Assembly (NCBI GenBank): GCA_002189035.1
Contig: CM007990.1
Location: 1,736,001-1,800,000 of the forward strand
Direction: 5' to 3'
DNA: 64,000 nt
Source: Utricularia gibba
Taxonomy: Eukaryota > Plantae > Magnoliophyta
Both the position numbers and the translations under genes were made by a program. How positions within the stretch are numbered: position 1 is the first letter of the stretch; every line of letters starts with the position of its first letter. The notes under the pieces are model-generated. The model was not told the origin of the DNA, ran no database searches, and was given only the letters and a program-made list of their open reading frames with translations. This document shows, one piece after another, positions 18,534 to 63,552 of the stretch.

Positions 18534-19327
18534 TTTATCTGAAAATGCATCATATCAGCAAGATACGCATGAATAGCAATATATTTTGTTGAATGTAGCT
18601 CAACTAATATTTCATTTTTCTCACAACAATGTCAACAGAAGTACATATTCTATCATCACTACGAATGAATAAGCCATTACACATTAACATGGACGACAAT
18701 TGTGTAAGAAGCGAGAAATTGCAATGTAATCTTAAAAATCGAAAAGCACCACCAGAAATCAGCAACATTGAAGTTACCTAATGGAGAAGGTCTATCTAAC
18801 ACCTATATTTTCCCAGAGCTTCACATTCGAGCACAATTGTATTGGCGCTGTGTGGTATGCGCTCGCGCAGAAGAAACCCCCAATTTTGATTGGTTTATTT
18901 CAACCTAATTTGCCTCTGTTGAGTAATTTGCGAAACCGGCTGTTTTATTTTTTTAGACATTGTATTACTCTTTCGGATTATACACAATCCAGAAGTGTCA
19001 TACCGTATGTTCGGGACGCTGCATGTAATGAGAAGTAGCGTCCAGGCAAATATCATCCTAAGTAGCGCCCTTCTATCCTTTGAGTGGAAAACATGATATG
19101 ACATAAAGCTAAAGTAAAATGTAATGTAGATTGTACGATTTAATCCAAACCATCCACTTGATGGAGATCCACCGGTCTAGATCTCATGATTTGCTAGCAC
19201 TATTTTGCTTCACCTTTTCAACTTGCTAATAAAAGGGCGTATTCTCATACTTCTTCATCTTTCACTCAAAGCTAGACTCTCATTTATAAGCAAGTCTGTG
19301 AGTGCTGCAAGCTTTGCAAACAAGGAG

Positions 19328-23358: not shown

Positions 23359-23629
23359 AGACATCGTGCATCATTTCAGGCATCGTACCATCCGAACCAA
23401 TACCCCATCGATGTGCAACCTAGATCATCGATGCATTATTCTACGACACAAGGAATGTATGATACACATGAGTCCGGTACCTCTACTACACAGAGTGTTC
23501 GTGGGAAAAAGTTATGGGGTTTTTCTTTGTAAGTAAAAAATGAATTAGCATGTCATTATCATTGTATTGTAAAGAATGTCATATAAATTATTTTACACTA
23601 TGCCATACACAAAACAACACTCTTTCACC

Positions 23630-23890
23630 TCTTGGGCGACGCATAGACACGTAAATAGCGCCCAAGGATGCTGAAGGTGTCGTTTATATCCATAAGCAAC
23701 GCCCATAGCATCCTTGGGCGCCGCTTATACATCTAAGTAGTGCCCATGACATTATGAACCAATGCCCAATGCATTTCTGGGCGTCGCTTATATCCATAAG
23801 CAACACCCATAGCATCCTTGGGCGCTGCTTATGATTTGTAAGTGACGTCCAGGAATGTCTAGGCGCTGCTTAACATAGCAAACAACGCCC
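23630..23890. repeat. Array of alternating-orientation AAGYRRCGCCC-like motifs
   Basis: About 12 copies at ~20-21 bp spacing, e.g. TAAATAGCGCCC, TAAGCAACGCCC, GGGCGCCGCTTA, GGGCGTCGCTTA, GGGCGCTGCTTA, TAAGTGACGTCC. The same motif occurs at 16870-17130, 19010-19075 and 28535-28600. Confidence 0.85.
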
Positions 23891-24367
23891 TTTGCTTAGA
23901 GAGTCAGAATTTTGTAATAATAAACTGTTAATTATTTACTTCTTTGCAATTTGTAGTCATAATGTTCTATTTTGTTAGTAAAAATATACTCAAGACCTTG
24001 TAAAAAAAAATTCTAGTTAATTTTTTCAAATATTGTTGGAAAAATACAAAATACTTCAAAAAATTAAATATATACCTACCTCACTTAAATATACACCAAC
24101 TCCCTTTTCAAACCCTATACCCTCTTATTCTCTTCTCCTCTTCTCCTCTTACCCTCTTCCATCGCATCTTCACCAACTTTCACCTTCAAAATCTCCACCT
24201 TCTTCTTCACTGTGTATGTAAATTTTTCTTCACATAACTGCTTCATCTTGAGAAAAATCTTCTTTTGATAAGCACAACATTTCAAATCCAACCAACTCAT
24301 TCAAGGTATATGATGTCTTTCTGTTTTTTATATTTATTACTAACTCCACTAACATTCGTAATGATAG

Positions 24368-25548
24368 ATGACTTTTGGAGACAAGATTAGACAAAAGATA
24401 CTTAGTTCCTGAAAATTTCGTTATATCAGAGAAAGAAGAAGATGAACAAATTTCAGATCAACCACCACAACGTGTTGGCACTCGTGCTTTTGCAGTTAGC
24501 ACCGAACATTTTAGATGTGGGTTAAGGTTACCTATCCAACCCTTTGTAGAGTCCGTGCTTCGTTCGGTGCGGCTTCCATTATCTCATTTAACACCAGCTT
24601 CTATTGGAAATAGTATTGCATTCATGAGGTTATGTGAAGATGATGGATATCCGCTTAGTGTTGGTGCATTGTTTAGCATTGCAAAGTGTTCCAAGGTTGC
24701 TCACACAAATCATTTCACAATATCATCAAAGGCAGGAATTAAAATAGTCATAGGTTTATGAGATTCTTATGGAGATTGGTGGACTAATTTTGTATGAGTC
24801 ACTCCACCGAAAGACATGCAAATAAGAATACCTAGACATCTTTCAACCTCATCCATTGTTGGAAAACCAACAGGTAGAAAATGCTTCCTTTGCAAGACTC
24901 TTTTAATTTTCTTAACATTTTGTATGTTTTCAACTAATAGTTTTTTTTAATATTATAAGGTATCCAACTATTGGATGAAGATGACAAACAGTGTCTTAGA
25001 GCATTACTAATAGCAAAAGACATGAGATGGAGAGATATTGAACCACCAATTTCAAATGTCAGAGGTGCAATACGTATTTGGTGTGGCACTCCTTGTAGGA
25101 TAAGAACAGTGCAGACTCATCTCGAAAAACATGATGTAGAAGAAGAACATACAACACATCATGATGTTTATGAGGAGGAGATGGTTGGTTCATCGGCTCC
25201 ACAACAAGTAGAGGATCATGATGTTGTGCAATTGCGTTCTGAGCTTGAGGAGGCCAGAAAGGAAATAGACCAATTGAAGAAAACCATCTACCAATATGAA
25301 ACAAGATATCCAATGTTCACTTTGCAGTAAATTGATGCTTCAAGTCCAAAGAAACTAATCATTTTAGATATTAACGGTCTACTTGCAGATGTTGTGTACA
25401 TGGACAAGGGACGTGCAGCAAGAAAACCTAACTGCATCATCGAGCGAAGAGCAAGTAAGTAGTACAATTTTGTCACTCTAACTACTTGTGCAGTGACGAC
25501 ATTCTTTTTTTTTATTACAGTTTATTTAATACCAAATTGTAGCGAATT
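24368..25548 (+). pseudogene. Accessory gene B of MULE-2: TRP28-like domain fused to FCP1/NIF-like HAD domain (3' truncated)
   Basis: RYLVPENF...STEHFRCGLRLPIQPF...LPLSHLTPASI; phase-1 intron 24874-24959 keeps the frame; coiled coil ELEEARKEIDQLKK; KKLIILDINGLLADVV (D at 25367); phase-1 intron; then IYLIPNCSEFIK, cut off by an Athila-like fragment. Has stops and a frameshift. Confidence 0.75.
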
Positions 25549-28271
25549 TATTAAAGGGCACCTGCTCTTTTAGTCTTGAACAGGTATTTGGGAGGCTGTT
25601 AAAGTGCCACTCGACAAGGCACCAGCATCATTGCCAAGGTGATCGTGTTCTTTTTGTGGGCGATGATGAAGAAGCTCCCATCAATTTGGGATGGTGAATT
25701 GCAACCCAAATGCACTTCATCACCGCTAAAAATGAAAGAGTGCTGCCATTTGCTTCTCTCATAACCAAGCTCGCCCAACATCTCAAAGTGAACCTTGACA
25801 AGCAGACCCCTCAGGTAGACAATTATTTTCGTTATCTAGATTTGGATGACCTGTTTTCTAACAGCTACCTGAAGGAGGTTGAGGGGAAGGCCATATTTGT
25901 TTAAGCGGGTAACAAAAGTACCATTACTTCTATGCCTCCCTCAATTGTGAATCCATATGGTGCGCCAACAGACTTTCCTCTTAGCACTACACCTTCAAGC
26001 CCCACCAAACACACCCTTCTGCTAGCTATTCAAAGTCTCTAGGAACAGGTTTCTGCACTTTCAACGAAACTGGACACTCTGATGGCTATTGCTTCACACT
26101 CCAGCGTGCCCCATGACTAAGGTACCCTCCGCTGCACTTGATGATGAGGACATCCTCAAAATTAAGTGTGGGGAGGAGTTTATGTTTCTTTTTATTTTCT
26201 AGTATTTTCTGGGCATTAGGACTTATGTGTTGAACTGTGTTGAATTTTTTTTATGTTTTCATGCTTCATGTTTTGTTTTTCTTTTGTTTTTTGTTTGTGA
26301 AAAATCCCCACTATGCTCCTCAAGTACATTTGCTTCCATGAATAAGGCTAGAATTTTAAGGATTGATCATGCTTAGATTCATGAATGTCTTGTTGCTAGG
26401 AAAATACTTCAATTATTTTTCCTTCTAGATATCAAGCTTTTGTTGCATGTTTTAGGAAAGATTATGCCGTGGCTATGATTATATTTTCAGTCCTTGTATA
26501 TATTATGTTGTGAATAATTTTTTGCTGCTCATATAGTGACCTGACCGAGATTGAAAAAAAAAGAGAAGAAAAAATACAAGGGGTGCCAAAGGTAAGGATG
26601 TTTGGCGAAGCCGTGGTTAACACCACACATAAGGTTTCATAATTCAAGCTCTCTTCCCCAAAGCGGGGACCTCTATCAAAAAAAAAAAAGAGAAAAAAAA
26701 AGGTCTTGAGTCACTATAGCATATGTTCTTTGCTGTTTTTGCCTTGATGATTTTAGTGTATAAGTAGTCATTAGTTGAGTCTTATCCTGATGCATGCAAA
26801 CTTAAGTGGGCTGCCTTAATTTGATTGAAGGATAGGAAAAGAATTGGAGTAAATGCCTGCTGTAGGAATGAACGTACCTTATTCGTGACTTAGGTTCTAC
26901 CCTTTTTCGTGGATTGCTATGATTTTCATATTTGAGGACAAGCATGATTTAAGTGTGGGGAATATGTTAAGTGTCATTTTCTAGTTAATTATTAGATATT
27001 ATTATGTGTTAATTATGTATGAAGTTGCCCAAATTAAGAGTCTTATTATTACGTATTTGATTTTTACTAGAAAATTCTTATTTTCCCGTTTTATGTACAT
27101 TTTATGCCTTTTTTTTCACACTTTAACCGAGACATGTCAGGAGACTGTCATGGAGTGTTGCAGGAGGGTGGTCAGAGTTTGACTTTTCGTGCCTTGTACG
27201 CGACTTGGAACGATTGTGGGCGGAAGACTTACACTAATCAAGGCCCCTGACTTACGGCATGTCAGAGTTTGCAGCAATGATTGGGCGCAAACTTGCACGC
27301 AAAAAAAGTCTGGTGGCACACGCAAGACAGAAGGAATTATGGGAAGGGGACCCAATGGAGTTAATGCACGTGCGGAGTGATATAAAAGCCACTTGGAGCA
27401 CTTAGTTTCGAACTTTTACCATTTTTCCTTTCTAGACTTAGACCTTTTGAGTTCTTCCTCCCCTCAAGGAGGAAGAACACTTAGCTTACTTTTCGTTTCT
27501 GTTTTGATGGCCCTTTTGGGCTAAAAACCTTTAGTTTTTTGGGAAGTAGATGAAGTTTCCTTCTAAGTCCTGAGCAATACACTCGATTCTTCGTTGAATT
27601 GATTTCGGATTCTGCATACTTCCATGCGTATTGTTGTAGTCTTTTTGTAATGAACTCTTAGTCAAGGTTCATGAGTAGCAGGCCACTCCTCGCGGATTTT
27701 GGTGAAGATCAAGGTGAAGAGCACCAATTCCAACCCCGTCGGTTCAAGGGAAGTAGCGGATTGTTTGTGGCCTAGGTACCACGATAGTGGACAGGTTGTG
27801 ACCTCGGACGTGCCACTGGCCATTGGCAGCAGCTGGGCACACGCGCGCAATTCGGTTTTGAAGGCAATCGAAGGCAATCCTCTTGTATTCCTCATCGTCC
27901 AAGGGGGAATCACATGAGGCTATTCCCGTGCCTCCTTGTCAATCAGAGTGTAAGGGAGAGTAGGCTATTCCTTACTCTTATAACCAGCTATTAGGAAGAA
28001 ATCAGTGAAAACCGAGGCAAGGATGGACAAAGGCCGGAGATGGAGTCTTATTCCCAGGAACTACGTCCCGTAATCAAGGCCCATCACTTAGGTTGTAACT
28101 TTCATTTCTGCATTTTAAAAACACCCTTTTATAAAACCATGACATTTTGTGGAAGTTTCTTACAAAACACTTTTCACGAAAAACAAATCCCTATGATCGA
28201 TACTCGTACTACGCTTTCTAGTGTCTTACGTTTTAAATATTTAAAATTTGTTGAGGAAACGACGCGCAACA
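25549..28271 (+). mobile_element. 3' part of an Athila-like Ty3-gypsy element (ORF2/env-like remnant, PPT, 3' LTR 26965-28271)
   Basis: INLG..IATQMHFITAKNERVLPFASLITKLAQHLKV remnant; AAGTGTGGGG purine tracts at ~26165 and 26951-26964; LTR TGTTAAGTGTC...GACGCGCAACA homologous to 46701-48001. No TSD; the 5' part is missing. Confidence 0.8.
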
Positions 28272-28394
28272 ACACCATAAAATATATCTCATTTTATTAC
28301 AAAGTGTTTTTAATAATATATAGTTTAAATACAAATCAAGTTATATTTATGATTGTTGTTTAAATTACTAATATACACAATGTACTTTTATCAT

Positions 28395-29078
28395 GAACAT
28401 AAAGATTTAGTTTGTTTTAATGAATGAAAATATTTTGGGGACAATTCTAAAAGTTGTTGATCGAAACTGTATCACTCTATCGGAATGCTCATGTTTCCAA
28501 AGAGAGATGCAGTATGTATTCACTCATGAGACCTTTGTTGGGCATCGCTTCTTATTCAAGCGGCGTCCAGAATATATTGGGCGTTGCTTGTGATTTCAAG
28601 AAGCGTTCGAAAAATATTTATATTTAGTTGTTTTTTAAAAATATATATTTCAAATAAACTATTATACACCAATTATATTATTAATAGAGATATGAAATCA
28701 TTTAATATAATAATTAAAAATAATATTTACGTAATTTTTTATGAAATGATTTAATATTACAATATATGAATAATTGTTACCTAATATTTATATTACTATT
28801 TATTTTATATCTTTTAGATTTAATAATATTATATGTCAAATTTTATTACAATTTTTTTCAATAGCATACAATTTACATTCTATAGTATATTATTAATTAT
28901 TGTTTCATAAGATTTTAATAAAATAATGAATATGCATATAGTTATATATATATATATATATATTATTAGAATTTATTTATAAATACAATATTAAGGATGG
29001 GTACTTTGCAAAAGGTTTTGAGAAGATGGGTATTTTTCAAATTAGGTAGGAGAGAGATGGGCGCTTTCAAATTAACTC
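28395..29078. repeat. Right long TIR of MULE-2
   Basis: Reverse complement of 16290-17050; includes a (TA)n tract at ~28944-28963. Confidence 0.88.
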
Positions 29079-40174: not shown

Positions 40175-41439
40175 TTCACTCCCATGATTGACACGTAATA
40201 TCGTTATGTGTATCACTTGTCAAGGAGAACTCTACAAGTGACACACCTGAAAATTCCAATTTGGAGAGATTGACAGCTGCTTGTCTCAATGTGGGAACTT
40301 TCTAATGAGTCCTTCCTTGTTGTAGTTTACGTAGCTCACGTTCGATTAACTACAATGAATCAAGATATGTACCAGAGTTCTCAACATTCTTGACTGAAGG
40401 GATATGCTCCTCTAGTGGAGCTTCGACACAATGAGCCATTGGTTTATAACTCTCATAGTTCACGGTCTGTTGAGAGGGAACATATGAAGTTCACAGCTAT
40501 TGTGAATATCCATAGTTTTGTGTAGTGTTCCTTAGATATGATACCTTTCTTCCTACTCCAAGGGGGTGGTTCCTTGACAAAAAAACAATTATTCTGCGTA
40601 TGACCGGATTTCTTATAGATGACACATTCTCTAATATCTTTTTTCTACCTTGTATTGAAATTTACGTCGCTGCACTGAGGTTTACTCACTGCTGAATTTG
40701 TATGAATGTTAGCCCCTTCTAGTATCCATTGATTCATCTGCTGCTCGACATTCAGCAGCATTGCATATGGTCTAGAAACGGACATAGAGTCATCTATGGC
40801 TAAGATTTGATTTCTGGTAGTGTCAAATTTCAAATCAAGGTCAATCAAAAAAAGGCTAAGTTTCGTTGGTGCAAAGAACTTATCAATACAGACAGGTATA
40901 TGACACTGTTCACATCTAATTTCTTGAAAGAGCACATCAAAATTTTCCCACAAAGTATCAGCTTAGTATAGTATTGACCAATGGTAGAGGTGTGATAGGT
41001 TCGAATCGGAATCGCGGTTCGAACTGGAATCGACGGTTTCGGTTCCGATTCGGTTCCTGTAGATCTACATTTGTATAATTTCGGTTTCATTTGAGAGACA
41101 TTGAACCGTGGAATTGTTAGTTCCGACCCATGTGGACCGTCACAATCGATGTTTCCGAACCGTGAGCCATACGGTTTGGAATAAAACATTCTACAATTCT
41201 AAATATTCAACAAATGTATATAAAATCAAAAAATGGTCATTTTTTAAAAAATATGAAAATTTTTGTAAAAGACTATGAATAATTATTGGATTAATATTAT
41301 AAAATTATAAAGAGATTATTCAATATAAAATATATTATTTCAATAGAAAATTATTAAACAATCCTAATTTATTTAATAATTTCGATAGTTCAACCAAATA
41401 CATATCTTAACACTTTGCTATTTATATGTTTATCCCAAC

Positions 41440-41930
41440 GACTAGTCACATGTTGCCAATGTTACTAATTACCTCAGTTTTTTCAAACTAGATTATGTTT
41501 AAGGTGTGATAATAGTGTAGGATTATCCAATTTTATTTTTAATTATAATTTTTTTCAAATAACTCTGGTGCGTTATTGGATATTTAATGAATTTTCTTTT
41601 TCATTAGTGGAAAAACCTTTATTCGATGGCATGTTAAAACAAGCTTAACCAGGGTACAAATTTTTTTATAGAAAAACCGTGCATGATATTACACTTGACA
41701 ATTTTAAAAACATGTGTGACTCTTTAATTTCTACTTTTAAATCTCTACAATGTATTTTTTGTTATTTGTGATGATTGGAAAGATTGTAACAATGAAAGTT
41801 ATTGTTATTACTTGTTCTTGGATGGATAATTTTTGGTGTATGCAAAATGAATTTTATCTTTTGAACAATGGCTATCACCACATAATAATTTTTCCATTAC
41901 AAAAATGATAGAAAAAGTAACAGCATTTTT
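41440..41930 (+). pseudogene. hAT transposase fragment
   Basis: Collinear with ~53660-54120 (CAAACTAGATTATGTTTA...GTGGAAAAACCTT...TGTGATGATTGGAAAG...TGGTGTATGCAAAA); ends at a deletion junction into the accessory gene near 41940. Confidence 0.8.
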
Positions 41931-41944
41931 GTTTAACTTGTGAT

Positions 41945-44875
41945 GGTTCTTGACACCGAATGAATATAAGATTTGAGACAAATAACCCGATGAGTTGATT
42001 GACATTGAATTTCCAACCCGTGTGGGCCCAATGAGATTTGCATTGAGCACGAGGTATTTTTGTTGTGGTTTGCACTTACCATTAGTGTCATTTTTAAAGA
42101 GATATTAGAATGTTTAGAGATTCTTTTGTCTCATTTGACTTCAAGATCTATTTGCTATGAGTGTATGCTCTAGGACTTGCGACACAAACCAATAAGAGGT
42201 GATAAGAGGAAAAAAGGGTTGATGCTTGATGCTTGTCGTTTCCACAATTGTCACAATTTGTAAGGAATTTTTGGAAGTAAAGGTGCGAGAAACATTAATG
42301 ATGAAGCTTGAGTAAGGGAATAAGAGAGGTTTTGAACAGAAAACTGAAATAAACGTAAGCGATGAACCTTAAATAGAATGGATGCTCCTGGGTTTGGAAT
42401 CCTGTCCAACTATGTTTGTTGCATTTTCACTCTTTTTTGGTCTTCTCGAGTACTCGGTTATAGGAGTAAGGAATTGTCTACCCTCCCTTACACTCTCTTG
42501 CAAGAAGGCATGAGAATAGTCCGATGTTGCTCCTCCTTGGACGAACGTGAGAATAAGGGGTCCTGCCAACATACCCTCATGGCCGAATTGCGCGCGTGTG
42601 CCCCGAGTGTTGCCAATGATCCAATGAGTCTAGATACAAGGTCACTACCTGTCCATTAATCCTGAGGTACGACCACAGACTAAATGTTGTCTTCCTCCTA
42701 CCAAAAGGGCACGAGTTGGTGCTCCCCGCCTTGCTCCTCTCTAAAACTCGTAGGTAGTGATTAGTTAATCATGAATCTTGAATAAGGGGACTATTACAGA
42801 AAGATTGCAACATAGTCGCGTGAAGACGTATGGAACCCATTCGGATTCAAAGAAGAGATGAAGATAAGCTAACGAAACATAGATCAGGAGGTGTCCCAAC
42901 TCAGAAACGGAAGTTTCTAGCCACAAACAGCCATACAAACTAAAGAAAATGAAAGCAGATTCTAGAGAGAAGCTAGAGGAAATTCCTCTAGAAAGAGAAA
43001 CGAAAGTCTAAACTAAACTAAAAGTAAAACTAAACTTGTCCAAACCGAATTGAGCTGAACTATTTTGTCTGAGCTTTCATGTTCCCGTGGTTCTGCTGGA
43101 CTTGGCATAACTTGCAAGCAAACGTCTGCTCTGACACTAGTACGCTAATGATACCGCCTGTCAGAGACTCCCGTGTTCCGCACGTCAAGGCTCATGATTA
43201 GGCATCTACAGTCTTCCGGAAATTAAGGGAATGTCAGCTCGAGACGATCCAATTTTTCGTCATCTACTGCCCTCTTTCTCTCACTTCCTGCCATGTGTGC
43301 GTCTTTAGAAAAACTCAATTAAAACTAGCAAAATTATTAGATAAAATACAAGATTTGGGATTATTACCCTAAACTAGATAAAAACCTAAATCTCATATTA
43401 TAGACTCTTAATTAGGCATTTCTAATCACAATTAAGCTTAAAAATAACCTAAGAAATAGTAAAAAATTGACACTTAACAGTGCTTATGAAAAAGGTGATA
43501 TAAGAATTTGAAAAATGATGGACAAGTTTTTTTTGGATACGTTCTCCAATGAAACATAAGTTTTCTCAAATACACCCTAATTTTAATGAAGTAGGTAAGG
43601 TAAAAGGTAAATCTTTTATTGTACATTTAGAAAAAAATGTGAACAAAAATATTTAATATTTTATTCAATATTTTTATTTCTCCATTTTAATGACAGATTT
43701 GATACCTTGCACAAGAGGATATGCAAGATCTCATACTCCTCTTTTTAAGTACGCAAAGGAATTTTAGTGGCATATTACCACCCTTTGTGGATGCACTGGG
43801 GATTAAACGCGATTGGTGTGGTGTGTTGAAGAATCTTAGAGCACCTAAGAAAAATGAAGATGAGTCTAGAGATGAGAGGACACATGATGATAATGATGCT
43901 GAAGGGAAGTACACGCATGATCTGAATGATGTAGATGATAGACTTGCATTCATAACAAAATAGAATGAAGAACTTCGATACAAGTTGGTATGAGAGCCAT
44001 TGGGCGTATATCGGATCCTCTTTGAATGCCTCTGAGTCACAACAAAAGTTGATTATATTGGACGTAAATGGTGTGTTCACAGACATCATATAAAATGTTG
44101 GACCATCAAGGTCACGAATACCTCTAGACAAAATCATATATGACCAATCAGGTACCTTAACACAACACTTATTTTTATCTGTTATATGCATTAAAACTGT
44201 GTGAGATATCATAAATAATCTTTGGCATAATTTATACAGTCTTTCTACATCCATATGCACGTGACTTTATTAGGGTGGTGTGCTGCATCTTTTTTTTTTT
44301 TTTTGGTATTTAGAATTGCACAAATACCTTGCAAATACTTTCTTTTGTAGGGAAATAGCTGCAAGCAATCACTAAATGAGTCTTTCAACCTTCATTATTT
44401 AATAAACTCAATTTCATGTGGAACTAATTGATGACTACAGACACAAGTGTACGTGTTCACAACAATCCTTGCAACACGGTCTACATGAAGGAGTTGAGTC
44501 GTGTTTAGGCTATGAATAATGGGTTGAACACAAGATATGATCGTTACGATATTGTATTGATTGATGACTCACCTCACAAGTTAATGAAAAATCCGATAAG
44601 CCATTTTTCTATTTTCGTCTAACATATACTTGGTTATATATCAAAACTAACCTTGTATTTTTTAGGAAAATAATGTTATTTTTCCAATCCCCTATTCGCA
44701 TACCAATAAGGATGATGCATGACTAAATATTGATGGTGAGATACAGACTTTTCTTAAAGGATTACGGTTTGCTTATGATGTTTGAAGCTATGTTAATGAC
44801 AATCAAATTAGACAGCCCCCCATACATAAGAGACATGTCTTATGGGATTATTATGCGTGCCTACAGGATAATTAG
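41945..44875 (+). pseudogene. Copy of the TRP28-like/FCP1-like accessory gene in hAT-1
   Basis: Collinear with 56940-58896: VGPMRFALST..., QQKLIILDVNGVFTDII (~44040), LIDDSPHK (44557-44580), same splice sites. Interrupted by the solo LTR at 42227-43479. Confidence 0.8.
42227..43479 (-). mobile_element. Solo LTR of the Athila-like family
   Basis: TGATGCTTGTC...GACACTTAACA; TSD ATGCT/GTGCT; homologous to 33097-34454. The flanks rejoin into the accessory-gene sequence. Confidence 0.85.
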
Positions 44876-46700
44876 AGGCAGTCTCTATATTAGTTCTTGT
44901 GAACAATTATATTGAAGTTTTAATACTTTTGTTGTTGACTTTTTTTCCAAAAGATAATTAGACCATTGTTTGGATGAAATTCATCATATTTTCATGCTAA
45001 TCATGTGAAATATGTTCCAGTGAATAGTGATCCATGAAATCACTTCTCATGCACTCATAATGATTTCTAAGGATGCATCTGATCACTTACGGACACGTAT
45101 AAGCTCTATTAAGTGTGCCTGGGCAGCGTATTCTTTTATCGTTTTGGTTGTTAAATTTCTAGACATTCATATCTATTTTTCACGATGTTTAGGATCTTCT
45201 CTAGATACCTTAATGATTGTTAAGGATATCTTAAAATGGTTTCGCAAAATATATGTGAAATGTGATTTAATTTTATAAATCTAATTTATTTAATCATTTT
45301 TACTTTTGGTTTGAAAAATAGATGAAGTTTAGAAAAAGTTTATGAAATAGAGATGTTTTGATTTTAATTTGGAAAATACACAATGTTATATTTATTTCAA
45401 AAAATTAAATTTTATCATAGATATTTTCAATTGCAGCTAATTTCATCATTTTAATCATTTATTTCATTAATTTAATTTAGAGGTATCATATGTATTATCA
45501 TATCGGTTCACAAATCATATTGATTTCATTTATAATTTATTGGGTATTTTACTAAGTACTCTAAATTAAAGTATTTTATAAATTAACATTGTATATCATA
45601 TAATATATCTAATGAAATACAAAAATTAATATTGTTATATATCATTTACTAATGACAAAACATACAAAATTAAAAATTGTTGAAAACTTCACTGCTAGAC
45701 TCCCACAATGGTTCATATGGGTGCTGAAAAATGCATTCAAATAGTAACCGCTCGGTTCCGGTTACACTTTAATTCGAGATTATCGGTTCTAATTTTGAAC
45801 CATAAGCGTCCGTACAGTTCCAGTTCTGGTTGGTTCAAGGTTTCAGAATCCGGTTCCAAACTTAAATTGGAACTATGGTTCACGGCAAACCGTGGTTTTG
45901 GAACCGAAGGGTCGCTAGAACCGTATGATTTCGAATTGAAACCGTACGGTTCAGAACCTGTTGCACCACTAAGCAATGGTCATATCGCCTTCTTTAGATT
46001 ATATAAATCAAGCTGCACTTAGTAGAACATGCTCTTATTCATTTGTCCATAGTGTGCATCGTGTGTTGTCCATAGGCCATAGGAACTCACAGAACCAGTG
46101 AAGTTCATCACTAGATCACGGGAAATGGAATTTAACAACCATGACATTACCATATAATCATTCCTCATCCAAAAGGTTGTGTGTAAGCTCATTCGGAGAT
46201 GGTTTAGCATTATTGTCATATGTGATTCCTAACTTCTTCTTAGCTCCTAAGTTCAGGCGTACTTCTATTCGTCAATCAAAATAATTGCATATTGTTAGTA
46301 AATCACTTACAAGCGATGTATTAGGATGATCAGATCCGCTCAGGTGTAAGGCATTTGCTTTGTCCGTCTCAATATCAGCAGCTAATGGTCAAATCAATGA
46401 TGAGTTGCCAATGCTCATTTTCATCCTTGTTGTTGAACTAAGATGGTATTGCATGTTTGATCCATACTCACTCCACCATAAACAAACAATGGATTGATCA
46501 AAAGTTTAATCAGATGGATTCAGAGAGTAGTAGAAGAGAAGCAAAGAATGTAATTGCTTGATATTCAAATTCTACAATCGTATTTAAAGCAATAGAAAGA
46601 ACATCCTAAAACCGTTATGAAACTAACAGCTAAAAATATGTGTAACTATAAGATCCCCTGCAATGCACTCCATCATATGACCATCTATCCACTCAATTGG

Positions 46701-53287: not shown

Positions 53288-55401
53288 ATGGAGGGGTCTG
53301 GTTTGCAAAATTCTTCTCAAGCTTCTCAAACTGATTCTACTATACCTTGCGTTTTTGAAAATGAAAGAGAATTTTCTTTTGGGGAAGACCTTCAATTTTT
53401 ACAAGAGCTTGAATGTGATCCTTTACCCGAACAAGATGATTTTTCTAGTCCTCAAGAAGTGGGTTCTTCTACCTCATCGAGTCTCCTTTGTCATAAAAGA
53501 TTGAAAAACACTAGTAATGATTCTCTGGATATTCAAGAGCATTTTGTTTTTTGTAATCCCAAAAAAATTTCTTGCAAACATTGTGGTAAAGAGTACAATT
53601 TCATAAAGGGTTGGGGAACCGGTACATATAAGAGGCATGTTAAGGAGAAGCATAATGATAAATTACCTCAGTTTCGTCAAACTAGATTATGTTTAGGGGG
53701 TGACAATAGTGTGGGATTATCTAATTTTTTTTTTAATTATAAACTTTTTCAAGTGTGGTGCGTTATTTGATACTTAATGAACTTCTTTTTTCATTAGTTG
53801 AAAAACCTTCTTTTAATGATATGTTGAAACAAGCTCAACTGGGATACAAAAAATTTTCTAGGAAAACCGCACATCATATGGCACTCGAGGATTTCAAAAA
53901 TATACATGACTCTTTAATTTCTACTTTTAAATCTCTACATTGTAATTTTTGTTTGACTTGTGATGGTTGGAAAGGTTGTAACAATGAGAGTTATATTGTT
54001 ATCACATGTTCGTGGGTAGATAATTCTTGGTGTATGCAAAAATGAATTTTAGCTTTTCAAGAATGACCATCACCACATAATGGTTTTTCTATTGCTAAAA
54101 TCATTAAAAAGGTCACAGCATTTTATGGAATATCTGATAGGATTTTTTCTATTTCTTTGGATAATGACTTTGCAAATACAAATGCTATAGACATTTTGAA
54201 AAGTAGCATGAATCCTATGTTAAATAGCATTTTTTTTTCCACACTAAGTGCACTTGTCATATATTAAATTTGTGTGTTCAAAATGATTTGAAAGAATGCG
54301 AAAATTTTTTAACTCCTATTTATGATTTAATTAGTATGATTAGAACTACTCCTAATAGAAGAGAAGATTTTAAAAGGATTTGTCAAGAAAGGAACATCTC
54401 TTATCGTAAATTCAAAAGTGATTGTTCAACTAGATGGAATTCTACATATAACATGTTACAATTTTTTATTCCTTATGAACATGTTCTTATTGAATTTTGT
54501 GAATCTGTCACAGGTTACAATTTCTTGACTCATTCTATTTTTGAAAAAAATAAGAGGTTTAGTAAATTTATTAGAAATATTTTATTCTTGTACTAAGATT
54601 TTGAGTGTTATTTACTACCCAACTTCTCAACTTGTGCTTTCATGTATTTGTAAAATTTCGTTTGCTTTTTATGACCATCAAAGTGATTGTGATTTTTTGG
54701 GAGATGTAGTGCAAAAGATAAAAAATAAGTTTTTGAAATATTTTGATGAAATCCCACATTTGTTTCTTATTGCACCTGTTTTGGATCCCCGGGTTAAGTC
54801 TAGAAGTATGAAAACATTACTTGAATGTATTTCGGAATCATTTAGTGCGGATGATGTTGCTTTTTCCATTAAAAATTGTGAAGAAATAGATGTTGATGCC
54901 AATAATGTTCTACGTGTCATGTATTCCCTTTATGCATCTAAATATAGTGATCCTAGTGTTCCTATTCCTAAAGCATGTAACAATTCGACATTTGATAGTC
55001 GCAATCCAATGGACATTATTCGTAGGAAGCATAGTTCATTTGTGTCCTCCTCTTCATCATCTTCATTAAACTCTGTTGATCAAATTACACTTTACAATAA
55101 TACTCCTATTGTTGAGGGTGTTGATGATGACAACTTTGATATATTGGGTTGGTGCAAGACAAATTCTACTACTTACCCTGTCTTGGCTAGAATGGCCAAA
55201 GATCTTCTAACACCTTCAGTATCTACAGTGGCATCCGAAAGTGCATTTAGTGCAGGGGGACGAGTTCTTAATCACAAGCACTCCAAATTGAACGAAGAGA
55301 CTCTGGAGGCATGCATTTTTCTAAAGGATTGGGTGGAGGCTGTGAAAAGAAATCAAACCTTATCCTCAAGTTCAAGTGAAGATGAAGTTGAAGACTCCTA
55401 A
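53288..55401 (+). pseudogene. hAT (Ac/RICESLEEPER-like) transposase with frameshifts and stops
   Basis: BED finger CKHCGKEY...TGTYKRHVKEKH; CLTCDGW; TRWNSTYNML; C-terminal dimerisation domain YPVLARMAKDLLTPSVSTVASESAFSAGGRVL...KDW. Broken near 53760, 54045 and 54545. Confidence 0.93.
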
Positions 55402-55475
55402 TTTGGAAACATTTAGTGCTCCATGAAATAATATTACTTTGTAAGAAAATGTTGTATTCATGTTTTTAATTAAAA

Positions 55476-56220
55476 GTGGGTGCCTGGAATTCGATCACAG
55501 ACTCGCAAACATCCTCCCAAGGCACCCACATGAGGGAAGAGGGTGTCTGGAAAACTGTCTCAAATACTCATTCCCAAGCACCCATATAACAGAGGTGGGT
55601 GCCTAGAAATCACTCTTCTCAGACACCCACACAATGCATTATTTTGTAGGTGCCATCCAACTATCTTTCTTGGACACTCTCCCGAGGCACCCACATGAGG
55701 GAAGAAGGTGTCTGAAAAACTGTCTCAAATACTCCTTCCCAGGCACCCATATAACAGAAGTGGGTGCCTGGAAATCACTCTTCCCAGACACCCACACAAT
55801 GCATTATTTTGTAGGTGCCATCCAACTATCTTTCTTGGACACTCTCCCGAGGCACACACATGAGGGAAGAGGGTGTCTAGAAAACTGTCTCAAATACTTC
55901 TTCCCAAGCACTCATATAACAGAAGTGAGTGCCTGGAAATCACTCTTCCCAGACACCCACACAATGCATTATTTTGTAGGTGTCGTCCAATTATCTTTCT
56001 TGGGCACTCTCTCGAGGCACCCACATGAGGGAAGAGGGTGTCTAGAAAATTGTCTCAAATACTCCTTCCCAAGCACCCATATAATAGTTGTAGGTACCTG
56101 GAAATGGCCTTACTCACTCTTTCTAGACACCCACACAAGGCATTATAGGTGCCTCGAAAAGGATATCTGACTCTCTTTCCAGACACCTACACGAGGCAAT
56201 GTGGGTGTGTGGAAAATGGT
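55476..56220. repeat. 165-bp tandem repeat, ~4.5 copies, inside hAT-2
   Basis: Units start GTGGGTGCCTGGAAATCACTCTTCCCAGACACCCACAC; the 55-aa periodicity of ORF 55634-56170 confirms 165 bp. Each unit carries several GGGTGYC/GRCACCC motifs in both orientations. Confidence 0.92.
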
Positions 56221-56905
56221 CTAAGCAATAGGTGAATATTCTTTATTTATTGAAATTAATTTGTAGTAATTAGGATATATAAAATCATTTCATTTTCAGA
56301 TTTTTATATTCCAATTAATGCACCAAAAAAATTTTATATTTATGAAAATTAAGAATACCTTCAAAGATTGCACAATCCCCAAATTTCGGGTACGGGTGCC
56401 TAATTTTTCATTTCTTCTGCCAGTCGCCCACATTAGCGATTCTGGGTGCTTCAAAATTGGAGTATTAATTACACGATGGATTCGCATCAATTCAAACAAA
56501 CGGCACACACCTTGTCTGAAAATAACGGAAGCTATTACCGACAACCTACGAAAGTAGGGATATCATTGCGCGTAATCATTAGCTTATGATTTGGTGTATT
56601 AAACCAAATCCCCACGCACCCATACACAGCGCTACACATCACCACCCCACTCCCCACGTTGTCAATTAAGACAACCCTAATCCCCACCCATGTGGTAAGA
56701 AAATTTTCTTACCTCTTTCCCCCTCCCCCCAGCCGAAAGCGACCGGACGCCCCCACAATCCCATCACCTACTTGGAGTGTTCTTTAAATTAAACAAGGTA
56801 AGTGATTTATTTTCCACCATGGGTTGCTGATCTATGTTCCAATTTGTAGTACCTTGTCGAATTATTGTAGTTTGAATTTTTATACAATTCTTATGAGTGT
56901 TTGTA

Positions 56906-58896
56906 GATACACACTTCTGAAAAATTGAGAACTAGATTCTTGATACCGGATGAATATGATATTTGGGACAAAGAACCGGATAAGTTGATTGAGAATGAAA
57001 TTCCAAAATGTGTGGGTCCAATGAGATTTGCCTTAAGCACGGAACATTTTCGTTGTGGTTTGCGCTTACCATTATTGCCCTTTTTAGAAGAAATATTAGA
57101 ATGTTTAGAGATTCCTTTATCTCATTTGACTTCAAGATCTATCTCATATGTGTTGGCCTTTATTAGTATTTGTGAGGAGTTATGTCTTGAGGTGGAACTT
57201 CACTATTTTTTTGCTGTGAGTGTATACTCTATGACTCTAAATAAGAACCACTACACCCTAAAGGAGAAAAAAGGGTTGGTACCAGTAAAGGATGTGAGAA
57301 GAGGATTTGAAGAATGGTAGACAAGTTTTGTTTGGATATGTCCTCTAAAGGAAACCAAATTTCCTCAAATTTATACTAATTCGAGCGAAGTAGGCAAGGC
57401 GAAAGGTAAATCTTGCTTTGTATTGTTAGAAGAAATATGAATAAAAATATTCCATATTTTTATTGAAATATGGAATATTTGTATTGAATGTTTTTATTGA
57501 AGATATTATGATTGAGTGTTTTTTTTAATCTACTCTTATTAAAACTATTGTGATTGAATATTTTTATTCAATATCCTTTTTGAATATTTTTACACTTATC
57601 ATGTTGAATATTCTTATTCAATATTTTTGTTAAATATATTGTTAATAAATTTACTTTTATTGTAGGATTTGATACCTTGTCCAAAAGAGATATACAAGAT
57701 ATTATTATCCTCTTCTCAAGTATGCAAAGGAGTTTTGTTGACATTTTTCCACCATTTATGGATGCACCGGGGACAAAACGCTATTGGTGTGGTGTGTTGA
57801 AAAATCATAGAGTCTTCCAAAAGAATGAAGACTTGTCTAGGAATGAGAGTACACAAGATGGGAATGATGTTGAAGGGGACGAGATCACACATGGTCTCGA
57901 TGATGTCGATGATAGACCTGAATTTATAACAAAGGAGAATGAAGAGCTTCACTACAAATTGGATTGGTATGAGAGTCGTTGGGCATATACCGGACCTCCT
58001 TTTAGTGCCTCTGAGCCTCAACGAAAGCTGATTATCTTGGATGTAAATGGTGTGCTAGCAGACATCGTTTACAGGGCTGGAGCGTCAAGGTCACGAATCC
58101 TCCAGATAAAATCATATATGACCGATCAGGTATGTTAAAACAATACTTATATTTGTGTGTTATGTGCATTAATGATTTGTGAGATCATAGGTAACTTTTG
58201 GTGCAAATTATGCAGTCTTTCTACGTCCACATGCCCGCGATTTTATTAGGTGGTGTTTGGATAATTTTGATGTAGACTTATGGTCATCCCGTGGGGGTAT
58301 GTGTGCTGCATCTTTTTTTTTGTTAGTATTTATAATTGGTGCAAACACTTGCAAGTGATTTATTTTGTAAGGAGCAACTACAAGCAATCACTAAATGGGT
58401 CTTTCCACCTTCGTTATTCAACAAACTCATTTTCGTATGGGACCAAACCATGATGACGGACACCGGCGTACATGTTCACAACAATCATAGCAACACGGTT
58501 TACATGAAGGAGTTGGGTCGTGTATGGGCTGTCAACAATGGATTGAACACAAGATATGACCGTCACAATACCTTATTAATTGATGATTCACCTCACAAAT
58601 CAATGAAAAATCCGGTAAGTCATTTTTTGCTAGTATACTCTTGCATACACTTGGTTATACCTCAAAACTAACCCTTCAATTTTTTGGAAAATAATGTTGT
58701 TTTTCCAAGTCCCTATTCGCATACTAATAGGGATGATGCATCACTCAATGTGGATGGTGAGATGCGGACTTTCCTTGAAGGGTTACAGTATACTAATGAT
58801 GTTCCAAGTTATGCTAATGAGAATCAAATAGGCCAGTCTCCCATACGTGAGGGACATGTCTTATGGGAGTATTATGCATGCCTACAGGATTGTTAG
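56906..58896 (+). pseudogene. Accessory gene C of hAT-2: TRP28-like domain fused to a complete FCP1/NIF-like (C1271.03c-like) HAD domain
   Basis: LRTRFLIP...STEHFRCGLRLPLLPF...IPLSHLTSRS; phase-1 intron 57406-57665 joins the exons in frame; RKLIILDVNGVLADIV, VFLRPHARDFIRWCLDNFDVDLWSS, FVWDQT, YMKELGRVW, NTLLIDDSPHKSMKNP|ENNVVFPSPY, IGQSPI...LWEYY. Lesions: TAG at 57318, a 1-bp deletion near 58100, an altered acceptor near 58686. Confidence 0.82.
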
Positions 58897-59079
58897 AAGG
58901 AGCCTCTGATTTCTAAAGAGCCGTCCCATTTATTTTCAATTAGACATACACTTACGAAATGTCACATTTTGATTATGCCATTGAATTTATTTTAAAATAA
59001 ATGAATAAATTAATGACAATACCTACGAAACAACTTATTTATACTGTATGGCACTTATTTTGATTTTTTAAATTAATTT

Positions 59080-60300
59080 ACAGGGACGGCACATACATAA
59101 AAATGTTTCTTGTAGGGGCCGCCAAAATATTGAAATACTATTAAATTTGATTACAGATGTGAATTGTTTATTAAACGATTTCAAATTACCATTGGCATCC
59201 ATATTTTAAAAAATATTTTTTCGTGCATAATTATTTTAAATAATTTTATGCTAAAACACAGAATTATAAGTGTGTTGTTGACGTACAATCACATTCTAAT
59301 TTAAAACATTTTTAGCAAAAATATGATACGAATGTAAGTTCTTGTCTAACTTAACCTTAGATGTTGTGACGTTAAGTAGAGTAAAATATTTGAGATACAA
59401 TATAGATATCGTGTGAAAAAACTTAATTTTTATAATCCTACCTTAAATATTCAGCACATTACAATATTTATGATGATAAACGTCATCATCAAGGACCATT
59501 TATATTAAAGAAAACATAAATTTCCATTTCGTGGTTTAGGGTTTTCAGGGTTTTAGGGTTTATGGTAAATGAAATATCTGAAATATTCCTGTCTTTTTAA
59601 TATGTTGCAAATGTGAAATTTTGGACAACACATACGTAACATTGCATTTTGTAAGGGCGGCAAAAACAATTTATGGAAACACTCTCAAATGTACTTATGG
59701 ATGTGAATTGTTTATTAAATAATTTACAATTCAAATTGACGTCCATTAGATACAAAATATTTTTTGTATCGAATTTCTATTTAAAAAAATTGGTTCAAAA
59801 ATCTGAAATTACAAATGTATAATTCAATTGTAATATAATGACATTAAAGTTTATAAATAATCATCCACATTTACATTAGACACTAATGTATCTTGTTCTC
59901 TAATTTAAATCAAATATTATGATGCTTTATAAAATAAATATTGAACATATATTTGCAAAGAAACGTGGTTTTTATTATTTTTAACGTTACAATATTGGTG
60001 ATGATAAACTTCATTACTATGAACAAAAACTACTAAAATTTTAAATGTGTAGTATAATTAAGGGTTTAGGAAAATTAAATGTGTAATAAATTCTCCTCAT
60101 TTTTTAAAAAAACGTAAGAATAGTTGGATTTTGAGAAGGTACATACAAACACACGTAATGCATAGGTGTTGATGAAATATATCCATAACCTTTTTCGTTT
60201 ATCATTTTTAAAATAATGAAAATTTGAAATTTGGGACGGCACATCAAACAATGAGTATTTTATAGGTGCCGCAATTTTTTAATTATTTTAAACAATTGAT
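59080..60300. repeat. Degenerate ~550-600 bp tandem repeat (2+ units) between genes C and D
   Basis: GGGACGGCACAT...TAGGKGCCGC-like block recurs at ~59083, ~59622 (variant) and ~60232, with shared downstream GATGTGAATTGTTT...ATTAAA and ACAATATT..TGATGATAAAC segments. Confidence 0.55.
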
Positions 60301-60717
60301 TTAGACTATATATGGATATAAATTTTTCTATGCAATATGCTTTTCTAAAAAAGTTGGCGTCCACTATATAAGTGTACAACCCTACCTAGTTTACATCGCC
60401 TTTTGCTGCATACAAAGGCTCTTCTTATCATTGTCATCGCGCTCCTGAAAACCCAGAATTCGTCGGCTTAAAATCCGGTAATCTTGTTATTGCAACTTAT
60501 ATTATTTTTTGTGAAATGTATTCCATGCATTTGTTGCTGTAGTATGCGTTATATATTAAGTTGGGTTTAGTTATTAAAAATTGTCTTTTCATATAATTAT
60601 GTATTTAGTTGGGTTTAGCTGCGTTTTTTCATCGTTAATATCATGTTTGTTTTGCTATTTTCCATTTCCTTATGTTTAGAATTTCATTCTTATTATGTAT
60701 CCTTTATTGATTAGGGA

Positions 60718-62154
60718 ATGGATAGATTTCGTGTTAAATATTTCATCCCAACCGATTGGTTGACAAGTCCTGCTCCGCAAAACACACCTCTTGATGCCAA
60801 TCCCCCTCATGAACATTCCAATGCTTGGCTTGTGTCTCGTAAAACATTTGATGTTGGTCTTAGGCTACCTATTCATCCCTTTGCTCTTGATGTGCTCACC
60901 TACTTAGATTGTCTATTGGGTTTTTAGCACCATCTTCCTATAGTATCTTAGACTTCTTACACTTGTGTGAAGAAGAATATGTAGAACCTTCCTTGTCAAA
61001 TTTTTTAACTTCCAAAAAAAAGCTCCTACTGGAACATGGTATTTTCAAGGATTACCAAATACTAGATTTTATCAAAACCTACCTAGAACTGTGGCACGAT
61101 GGGATAAACTTCTTTTATGGATTGTACCACCTACATCTTTTGAAATTTCAAGGCATTATCCATTAACATATCCTGGGGATGATGTTATAAATTCTCGTAT
61201 TGAAAAAATCAATGTGAATGAGGAAACTAGACATGCATTAAAAAGTCTTTTGCAATCAAAAAGATATATGACTGAAGACATCATCCCAAAGTATGCTCAA
61301 ATTCGAAGTAAGTCTTGTTAATTTACATTATTTTTCCAATATGTTATTTTACTTATTTATTCAACACTATGACAGCACTTCAAAACATTCATGGTGTCGT
61401 TGAGTGGCGGTCTACACCAACATCAAGGCGAAATCGTCATCAGCTTGTTGTTTATGAACAACCCATTCCGCTAACCATCGATAGCAATGAACAACAGGTA
61501 AATAAAGTAGGAATATTATTTAAATTTTTAATTTTCTCTTCAAATAAATAAGGTTTGCAATATAAAAAAATTTTTGTGTAGAAGAATTCTGAACAAGAAA
61601 ATGGAGATGAGGAGAATGAAGTACCTATTCATGAGAAGGCTGAAGTGTATATTAATGAGGAGCTCTCAGTTGCACGCCAACATGACAAAGAGCTCATTTT
61701 AAACCAATATAAACACATTCAACGGATGGAAAATGAGGTAATAAAAATGAAACTTATTTTGCTAATACATGTGATAGTTGTTTTTTTATGTTTTCTAATT
61801 TAGTTTTTTTTCTTCTTTAGATAACAGATCTGAAGTTTCAGATTCAAAAAAAAAAACAGAATGGATGATTTGGTAGCACACCAATCTGTATACAAGGTTG
61901 AATTGAAGATAAAAGGCGATGAATTGATTGCTGGACAACAAAAATCTATCAACTTTCAATTGGAAATAATGAAGCTGAATGAAAAAATACAGGTGTTAGA
62001 AGAAGAATTACAACTTCACAGATTGCAAGCTCAATTGAATGAAAACGATGTTATCGCAATGGCTCAACAAAGAGACATACCTTCGACAAGTGCGGGCACA
62101 AACAAAGATAAAGGAAAAGGTAGAGGCAGACCCAAAGGAAAGGAAAAAAAATGA
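60718..62154 (+). pseudogene. Accessory gene D of hAT-2: TRP28-like domain + coiled coil + basic AT-hook-like tail
   Basis: TATA at ~60364; 5'-UTR intron ending just before the ATG; MDRFRVKYFIPTDW...KTFDVGLRLPIHPFALDVLTYL; later exons; coiled coil FQLEIMKLNEKIQVLEEELQLHRLQAQL; ends KGKGRGRPKGKEKK*. Frameshifted. Confidence 0.68.
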
Positions 62155-63552
62155 AAAAGAGTCATTAACAATGTTGTGTTTTTTTTTTCAAAAGATTTGA
62201 CTTATTTTGTAGTATTATATTTCATTTGTGACAATCTAATTATTTCGAAAATGTCGCTTAATTTTCTAATAACTAATTGACATTTTTTCTAGTAAAATTA
62301 TAAAATTAAACGTAAAAGCAAACATACAAATTACAAAAGAGATAACAACAATATTTGTTTTTTCCAGTAAAATTAAATTATTTCGTATTATTATGGCTCG
62401 CTCATACCTAAACGGCACCTACTTATTTAGTAGGTGCCACTACTAGAAAATTATTTCGTATCATTTTTTTATACGTCCTACTAAATTCTCTAATGTGTAG
62501 GTATCGCTTCAAATTTTTAATAACTGAATCATGTTTTTTCTATTAATTATAAAATTGAACATAAAAAACAATCATACGAATTACAAAATGGACGATAACA
62601 ATATTTATTAATTTTTAGTGAAGTTAACTTATTTCGTATTATATTATATATTGAACATATACCAAATTATTTATTATATATTGAACTTATATCAAATTTA
62701 TTTATTTCATATTATTATATTAAACTCCCACCAAGTTACTTATTTTACAGATGATGTTAATATAATATTATTATGTTTCATTTTTATGTGAAACTGTAAG
62801 ACTAAATTCTTTAAATGTATTCACTTTTTAATAATAAAAAAATATTTTCTCATAAATACTAAAGATTTAAATTAAAAATAATTTATTAGAAATATAGTTG
62901 AAAAAAATAATTTTTCGTATATATATATTAATTTTATTTAAAATAAAAATCAATTCTTTAAATATTTAATATTTATTAAAAATTTCAATTACACACACCA
63001 ATAATTATTCATATAGATGCCTGGAAAGCAACTACAAACAATAACCGCGGTTCCGGTTACAGTTCGGTTTCGTAAATCTCGGTTTCGGTTTTGAACCGAA
63101 ACCGTCCGTACGATTCCAGTTTCGGTTCGGTTCAAACCTTCCGGATACGGTTCCGAACCGAAACCGGAATCGTTGCCCATGACGAACCGTGGTTTTGGAA
63201 CCGACGATTCGCTGGAACCGTTCGAACCGAACCCACCTCTAGTTCCATATCACACAAAAATATCGTTGTCTACAAAACTTGTAACCATCATTCAATGCAC
63301 TTGAGACACTCTTATTGGCTAGTAACCAAAATAATTTAAATTATATTATATTTAGACTTTTAGTATTAATTCGCAGAAATTAATTGATAAGTCAATGCCT
63401 CCGACCATGATGAAAATAAATAATCTTTTTTGTTTGTACTTTTGTTTTTCCATCGCAGTTTCTCGTTCTCGACGTCACTGCCTCCGCCGATATGACTTTC
63501 CGCTCGGCGCTCCCCCTAAATTCTTAGCCGGTTTTCATGGTCGTCACCCGTA

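Follow-up and report, generated by a model that had tools for sequence, protein, structure and literature searches.

A decayed TRP28-NIF fusion gene, probably an accessory gene of hAT and MULE DNA transposons, in Utricularia gibba

Results

A five-exon gene model at 56907-58896

This study concerns a broken gene within a 64,000-nt stretch of plant DNA from Utricularia gibba (the window, whose numbering is used for all positions), which has a G+C content of 36% and is dense in transposons. The gene, designated copy 1 of a TRP28-NIF gene because relatives of it occur elsewhere in the window, fits a five-exon model on the + strand at 56907-58896, in which an exon for a TRP28 (Transposase_28) domain is followed by exons for the motifs of a putative NIF-type HAD phosphatase. 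The model is based on a three-frame translation of positions 56900-58900 together with a splice-site search that took in every GT/GC donor and AG acceptor, and its parts are listed below, with a slash marking each splice point.

56907..57405, + strand: exon 1, TRP28 (Transposase_28) domain and W..F segment, with an in-frame TAG at 57318-57320 (Pfam PF04195, translation)
57406..57665, + strand: intron 1, 260 nt, GT..AG, phase 1, AT-rich, with short internal repeats
57666..58129, + strand: exon 2, acidic linker of about 115 residues with a short coiled-coil remnant, then HAD motif I, LDVNGVL
58130..58215, + strand: intron 2, 86 nt, cag/GTATGT .. TGCAG/ (splice-site search)
58216..58296, + strand: exon 3, FLRPHARDF..WSS segment with HAD motif II (Pfam NIF 13.5 bits, profile 36-61)
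58297..58384, + strand: intron 3, 88 nt, ggg/GTATGT .. CTACAAG/, containing an indel relative to copy 2
58385..58614, + strand: exon 4, motif III Lys (YMKEL) and motif IV (LIDDSPHK) (Pfam NIF, Atlas, and PDB match)
58615..58686, + strand: intron 4, donor ccg/GTAAGT intact, acceptor lost
58687..58896, + strand: exon 5, C-terminal segment D..SL...L.GL....DV, with the stop codon TAG at 58894-96 (translation, comparison with copy 2)

The original prediction, made from the letters of the DNA without database searches, held that splicing from 57405 to 57666 joins the TRP28 exon in frame to exons encoding HAD motifs. Translation and the splice-site search bore this out: the donor aag/GTAAAT at 57406 and the acceptor TTGTAG/ at 57665 bound a phase 1 GT/AG intron, across which exon 1 continues in frame into exon 2. 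The linker in exon 2 runs into HAD motif I without an intervening intron, and because approximately 115 residues of non-NIF linker precede motif I within that one exon, intron 1 is not itself the point of fusion. The start of exon 4 is most likely at 58385, and not at 58372, the acceptor CAAG/ at 58384 being present in copy 2 as well. A further frameshift at the junction of exons 3 and 4 was considered as a candidate lesion and was ruled out by this in-frame acceptor common to both copies. The original prediction took the kept introns as a sign of capture at the DNA level and not through cDNA, which is plausible. The amino-acid identity between copies 1 and 2 in exon 5 was 68%.

Assignment of the TRP28 and putative NIF domains

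Exon 1 of copy 1 belongs to PF04195 (TRP28), with a score of 31.9 bits and an E value of 1.6e-7 against the Pfam cut-off of 26.2 bits, and the same domain in copy 3, a diverged relative described below, lies past that cut-off at 37.4 bits. AlphaFold2 modeling of the TRP28 exon from a four-row alignment gave a predicted local distance difference test (pLDDT) score of 43 and no usable fold.

For the phosphatase half, the original prediction had anticipated that a hidden Markov model search would recover the NIF domain (PF03031). This expectation held in part: the domain was recovered exon by exon, in exon 3 (13.5 bits) and exon 4 (13.2 bits, profile 91-125), as colinear matches that each fell below the cut-off of 21.8 bits and that together exceeded it, the gene being split and broken and its pieces having been scored. 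The two exons thus match, independently of each other and at colinear positions, the same 1 of 24,736 Pfam families. In the ESM Atlas, 93 of the 100 neighbors of exon 4 were NIF clusters (the top one at 0.92, with 198 shared features), and 73 of the 100 neighbors of the open reading frame (ORF) that ends in motif I fell within the NIF set. PDB sequence searches with the short pieces of the gene returned chance matches or none; exon 4 alone reached UBLCP1 (3shq, an NIF-family phosphatase), and this best match was weak (E 0.72) and spanned the motif III-IV region.

The HAD motifs occur in canonical order, from motif I (LDVNGVL) through motif II (WSS, in exon 3) to the Lys of YMKEL and motif IV (LIDDSPHK), both in exon 4, all as predicted. 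The Ser/Thr of motif II, the Lys of motif III, and the acidic pair of motif IV are each present. Motif I departs from the DxDx(T/V) pattern, reading LDVNG in copies 1 and 2 and LDING in copy 3; as had been predicted for copy 1, the nucleophilic Asp is kept and the second Asp is Asn. Since the residue at +2 is Asn in all three copies, the general acid/base Asp is absent; according to the original prediction, the C1271.03c-like host subfamily may share this DxN variant. Asn at the general-acid position usually cripples turnover in HAD phosphatases. Because of this residue, which is invariant in the three copies, a weak or slow phosphatase, or a pseudo-phosphatase that holds its substrate, would fit at least as well as an active enzyme.

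On the basis of these comparisons, the protein appears to be TRP28-like in its N-terminal half (Transposase_28 domain, W..F segment, acidic linker, and short coiled coil) and an FCP1/SCP (NIF)-type HAD protein of the DxN kind in its C-terminal half. We take the latter, predicted assignment to be sound, though formal membership in the family is incomplete.

Lesions in copy 1

Copy 1 proved to be more heavily inactivated than first stated. The two lesions of the original prediction, a TAG at 57318 and a 1-nt deletion, were both confirmed, and the loss of the intron 4 acceptor is added to them. The in-frame TAG at 57318-57320 lies in exon 1 at a position where the paralog in a Mutator-like element (MULE) has a Trp codon. 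The deletion, at 58098/58099 in exon 2, was identified relative to copy 2, which has one more A; it shifts the frame, and it is confirmed because exon 3 reads on in the frame that results from the shift. At the end of intron 4, copy 1 has TG at 58685-86 where copy 2 reads AG (TTAG/GAAAAT), and the splice-site search found no canonical in-frame alternative acceptor for the intact donor at 58615. No initiator ATG or first exon was found upstream of 56907 in copy 1, or upstream in copy 3. All three copies in the window are dead relics.

The hAT elements carrying copies 1 and 2

Self-comparison of the window revealed the second copy of the gene. Copies 1 and 2 lie in two related hAT elements, whose extents are given below together with that of copy 2; TIR stands for terminal inverted repeat.

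53288..63241, + strand: hAT copy 1, as far as traceable, with transposase, tandem array, TRP28-NIF gene, TRP28-coiled-coil gene, GGTTCG-type subterminal repeats, and right TIR
40985..45971, + strand: hAT copy 2, a deletion derivative of 4,987 bp, with TIRs TAGAGGTGTGATAGGT / TAGTGGTGCAACAGGT and GGTTCG-type subterminal repeats
41947..44886, + strand: copy 2 of the TRP28-NIF gene, 77-84% identical to copy 1 in nucleotides, with many stops

The assignment to hAT is based on the TIRs and target-site duplication (TSD) of hAT copy 2 and on the transposase domains and right TIR of hAT copy 1. The 8-bp TSD of hAT copy 2 reads ACCAATGG / AGCAATGG, with 7 of 8 positions matching. The transposase of hAT copy 1 comprises a BED-finger ORF at 53288-53767 and RNase-H-like and dimerization domains at 54541-55401 (PF05699, 76 bits; PF14372, 39.6 bits; and a weak BED match), and the right TIR ends at 63241. 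With copy 2 inside TIRs and an 8-bp TSD, and copy 1 flanked by hAT transposase domains on one side and by a matching right end on the other, the claim that the gene is transposon-borne was upheld.

Both elements present the same order of parts, namely a 5' segment (53661-54124 in hAT copy 1 and 41467-41929 in hAT copy 2), the TRP28-NIF gene, and a 3' subterminal region (62966-63221 and 45670-45924, respectively). This common order indicates that the gene was already within the common ancestor of the two elements. No TIRs of a nested element bounding the cargo region were found inside the hAT. hAT copy 2 no longer has the C-terminal part of the transposase, and its TRP28-NIF gene lacks the 5' end and half of exon 3. 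A 1.24-kb repeat occurs at 33219-34454 and 42245-43479 with 80% identity, and its second occurrence is a foreign insert in exon 1 of copy 2.

Several further features of hAT copy 1 and its borders were observed. A 165-bp tandem array (at least 3.6 units, 87-93% alike) occupies 55509-56222, between the hAT transposase and the TRP28-NIF gene, and recalls the tandem arrays adjoining TRP28 ORFs in Retand elements. The AT-rich spacer that separates the two accessory genes of this element holds three occurrences of a 40-nt motif, GGGACGGCACA...GGGGCCGC, at 59083-59122, 59622-59661, and 60233-60272, with a spacing of 540-610 bp. On the right-hand side, positions 63246-64000 are 84% identical to 36399-37206, the start of a Core-2/I-branching enzyme gene (PF02485, ORF 36744-37829); because this homology begins 4 nt past the right TIR, hAT copy 1 borders a paralogous copy of the Core-2/I-branching host gene region. 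On the left-hand side, a Ty3/gypsy pol fragment with RVT_1 and an integrase zinc-binding domain (49033-51100, + strand) lies just upstream of the expected left end of the element and may relate to the missing end.

A diverged copy in a MULE

A third copy of the gene, more diverged and much older, was located inside a MULE in the same window.

16290..29078, + strand: MULE, 12.8 kb, with TIRs of about 770 bp and a perfect 10-bp TSD GGATAACAAC (16280-89, 29079-88)
24372..25460, + strand: copy 3, diverged, with TRP28 exon, intron 1 (24874-24959), linker with coiled coil, and motif I LDINGLL

The element appears complete and has the long TIRs, the 10-bp TSD, and the transposase domain of its class, the last being mudrA-type and located at 21859-22668 (PF10551, 55 bits). 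A segment within it at 26965-28272, probably a nested repeat, matches 46701-48002 with 87% identity.

Copy 3 was recovered by tblastn with E values of 8.6e-32 for exon 1 and 8.8e-12 for exon 2. It contains three stops only, and the remainder of its NIF domain is missing. Copies 1 and 3 are 38% identical over 164 residues in exon 1 and 34% identical over 140 residues in exon 2, and the motif I block KLIILD[VI]NG[VL]LAD[IV]VY is identical between them at 13 of 16 positions. Intron 1 has the same position and phase in the two copies (..SS.VGK..G/), with the donor at 24874 and the acceptor at 24959 in copy 3. That this architecture recurs in a MULE at 38% identity, with intron 1 unchanged in position and phase, argues for a true TRP28-NIF fusion and not a chance juxtaposition.

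A second TRP28 gene in both elements

Both hAT copy 1 and the MULE carry a second accessory gene in which a TRP28-like domain is followed by a coiled coil.

60718..62150, + strand: TRP28-coiled-coil gene of hAT copy 1, with TRP28-like domain, coiled coil, and basic tail; frameshifted
17367..18411, - strand: TRP28-coiled-coil-basic-tail gene of the MULE (PF04195, 26.3 bits), counterpart of the gene at 60718-62150

The hAT gene scored 18.4 bits for PF04195, which is below the cut-off, and is homologous to the MULE gene. Its basic tail holds an RGRP (AT-hook-like) motif followed by KGKEKK, and that of the MULE counterpart ends in RRKGKEKK. The TRP28 domains cluster by gene type and not by carrier: the NIF-type domains of hAT and MULE are 42% identical over 118 residues (alignment score 263) and the coiled-coil-type domains 40% identical over 55 residues (alignment score 111), whereas cross-type pairs show 30-32% identity and alignment scores of 81-104. 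This clustering indicates that both gene types are older than their present distribution over two superfamilies.

Past purifying selection on the gene

To assess selection, 415 aligned codons of copies 1 and 2 were compared by the Nei-Gojobori ratio of nonsynonymous to synonymous substitution rates (dN/dS), and the null distribution was obtained from 1000 permutations that kept the substitution spectrum as observed and reassigned it among the same exon positions. The whole gene gave a ratio of 0.42 in frame, compared with 0.70 ± 0.11 for the null (0 of 1000 permutations as low, p < 0.001) and with 0.77 and 0.81 for the shifted-frame controls. The ratio for the NIF part was 0.32 (null 0.71 ± 0.17, p approximately 0.002) and that for the linker 0.39 (null 0.73 ± 0.25, p 0.03). 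Since both hAT gene copies are now dead, the low ratio implies that a substantial share of their divergence arose under constraint. We conclude that the gene was under past purifying selection, which was strongest on the NIF part. The original prediction had named a ratio of about 1 across copies, as for neutral Pack-type cargo, as a finding that would speak against it, and no such ratio was seen in the whole gene or in the NIF part when they were set against the permutation null of about 0.70. By dN/dS, the gene does not behave as a Pack-type transduplicate, that is, as a captured host fragment without coding constraint.

Transcripts and relatives in public data

Among the RNA runs of the species, none was shown to contain this stretch of DNA. 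No contig spanning the exon junctions was found in four RNA runs at 80% likeness; the contig sets were small, and hence this is no evidence of absence. One 673-nt RNA contig (run X13) matched 83 nt of exon 5 (58700-58782) at 82% likeness, the rest of it being diverged but recognizably related, which indicates that a relative of the gene's 3' end is transcribed somewhere in Utricularia gibba.

A HMMER search with the 153-residue ORF of exon 2 against 1.84 billion representatives gave 0 matches. Word-indexed protein searches with the exon 4 ORF and the TRP28 ORF likewise gave none, under a length filter of 0.55-1.75 times the query that excludes full-length fusions, and neither exon 4 nor the TRP28 alignment yielded a match in metagenome scans. 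In a control search, the hAT transposase ORF retrieved plant hATs at 38% identity or less only, from which it follows that close relatives of the Utricularia gibba genome are poorly represented in the protein collection. Given this poor representation and the length filter, the blank protein and metagenome searches do not show novelty. Distant hAT loci of Citrus unshiu and Silene latifolia contained no TRP28 and no NIF, and a literature search found no paper joining Transposase_28/TRP28 with NIF/FCP1.

Discussion

The gene whose structure, carriers, lesions, and past purifying selection are described above is probably a pseudogenized accessory (non-transposase) gene of a DNA-transposon-borne TRP28-NIF family that was once under selection and served the elements. 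The reading of the fusion as transposon-encoded is supported and extends to three copies, two superfamilies, and a partner gene. If the protein did serve the elements, its TRP28 part would recruit it to the DNA of the element or to a partner TRP28-coiled-coil protein, and its NIF part might bind a nuclear protein phosphorylated on Ser or Thr, such as the C-terminal domain (CTD) of RNA polymerase II or a silencing factor. Such a phosphoprotein would then be held, or be dephosphorylated slowly, in a way that could favor transcription or transposition of the element.

More tentatively, and with doubt outweighing confidence, we propose that the TRP28-NIF and TRP28-coiled-coil genes may form a portable two-gene module that moved between the hAT and MULE superfamilies, which would extend the range of TRP28 beyond its known place in Retand retrotransposons. 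The TRP28 domains could target the module's products to element chromatin or to each other, and a DxN NIF domain could trap the phosphorylated CTD or another phosphoprotein, thereby shielding the element from silencing or boosting its transcription. If true, the module would represent a previously undescribed class of transposon counter-defense or transcription factor.

A number of observations count against the interpretation of the gene as an accessory gene of the elements. Neither an intact copy nor a start codon nor a transcript was found, and searches by TIR pattern, TSD, subterminal-motif density, and paralogous flank did not locate the left end of hAT copy 1. No single piece reaches the Pfam NIF cut-off, the best PDB match is the weak one to UBLCP1, and the public protein and metagenome collections gave no relatives. 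In the TRP28 exon, dN/dS was 0.62, which is not significantly different from neutral (null 0.83 ± 0.26, p 0.2), and the exon identity between copies 1 and 2 (approximately 82%) is not above that of alignable intron parts (74-84%). The part that concerns function is one that we infer.

Some of these observations would be expected if the gene were Pack-type cargo that evolved neutrally. In that case, pieces of a host NIF gene would have been transduplicated beside a TRP28 gene in an ancestral hAT element and independently in a MULE, with the reading frame a leftover that never served the elements. The broken state of three of three copies in the window, the lack of an observed transcript, the ratio in the TRP28 exon, and the similar conservation of exons and alignable introns are all compatible with this explanation. 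It is nevertheless unlikely, given that the ratios for the whole gene and the NIF part lie below all or nearly all permutations and below the shifted-frame controls. Moreover, the fusion persists in another superfamily at 38% identity with only three stops, its intron 1 unchanged in position and phase and its motif I conserved; survival of the frame at this divergence argues against neutrality, since neutral decay that far would erase it.

Alternatively, the functional gene might be a host gene, a domesticated TRP28-NIF fusion comparable to MAIL3 for PMD-PP7, of which the hAT and MULE copies would be captured or converted passengers that mimic selection. Fusions of transposon domains with phosphatases are known as host genes (MAIL3 and VvMAIL2.2; PMC7156037), and the RNA contig with 82% likeness to exon 5 shows that a relative of that exon is transcribed. 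We consider this improbable, however, because three of three copies lie within transposon boundaries, the two hAT copies hold the gene at the same internal position, the partner TRP28-coiled-coil gene is present in hAT copy 1 and in the MULE as well, and no host copy was seen in the one window searched. That the NIF-like motifs and the in-frame splice are a coincidence in AT-rich transposon DNA is scarcely credible, for although single NIF matches were weak (E 0.05-0.07) and short pieces gave unrelated chance matches in the PDB, two exons match one Pfam family of the 24,736 colinearly, the Atlas neighbors of exon 4 are overwhelmingly NIF (93 of 100), four motifs are correctly ordered, and the coding frame is conserved across copies.

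The interpretation as a transposon accessory gene bears on a domain that is widespread in the transposons of flowering plants, has no known function, and has been described so far in Retand retrotransposons only. Finding TRP28 fused to a probable signaling domain in two unrelated superfamilies of DNA transposons, and bearing the mark of past selection, would provide a handle on its role, in that TRP28 proteins may bring an effector to something. If intact copies exist, a transposon-carried factor resembling a CTD phosphatase becomes directly testable.

Comparison with known systems

PF04195 is described as the characteristic antisense ORF of Retand Ty3/gypsy elements and as a domain of unknown function with predicted DNA binding that is said not to be found outside transposons (PMC11963269; PMC6317226). 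The TRP28 ORFs of Retand share with the present genes the same N-terminal domain followed by a region prone to form coiled coils, the status of a mobile-element accessory gene of unknown function, and the proximity of tandem arrays to the TRP28 gene, which in Retand lie in the region from POL to the 3' long terminal repeat (LTR). The carriers differ, being hAT and MULE DNA transposons here, in which the gene is in sense with the transposase, and an NIF-type HAD C-terminus is absent from the domains listed for TRP28 ORFs in the Retand survey (PMC11963269). The Retand placement of the antisense ORF, between pol and the 3' LTR, does not recur either: the TRP28 genes of the window are all within hAT or MULE boundaries, and its sole Ty3/gypsy pol fragment (49033-51100) lies outside those boundaries on the same strand.

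The putative phosphatase half resembles the FCP1/SCP/CPL/UBLCP1 group (NIF, PF03031, of the HAD superfamily) in the canonical order of motifs I-IV, the colinear Pfam matches, the match to UBLCP1, and the NIF neighbors in the Atlas. It differs from that group in having DxN in place of DxD in all three copies, in its transposon-domain N-terminus, and in being element-borne and, in this window, dead.

In concept, the nearest systems are the PMD-PP7 fusions and the MAIN/MAIL1-PP7L module of Arabidopsis, which pair a transposon-derived domain, in cis or in trans, with a phosphatase-like domain whose catalysis may be atypical; the module has a role in the silencing of transposons and in gene expression, and the fusions originated on more than one occasion (PMC7156037). 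The domains themselves are unrelated, PMD versus TRP28 on one side and the PPP-type PP7 versus the HAD-type NIF on the other, and the known cases are host genes whereas the present gene is internal to transposons. The TRP28-NIF gene would add a second independent case, after PMD-PP7, in which plants or their transposons have paired a transposon domain with a phosphatase-like domain.

Like MURB, VANC of VANDAL, and the Peptidase_C48/ULP1 proteins of MULE and CACTA elements (PMC12973397), which are accessory proteins of plant TIR transposons, it is a non-transposase gene kept in autonomous DNA transposons and common to several elements. With Pack-MULEs and Pack-hATs it shares host-like coding sequence with introns in a DNA transposon, and it differs from them in its complete domain, in the conservation of the in-frame fusion over two superfamilies, and in a dN/dS well under the neutral control.

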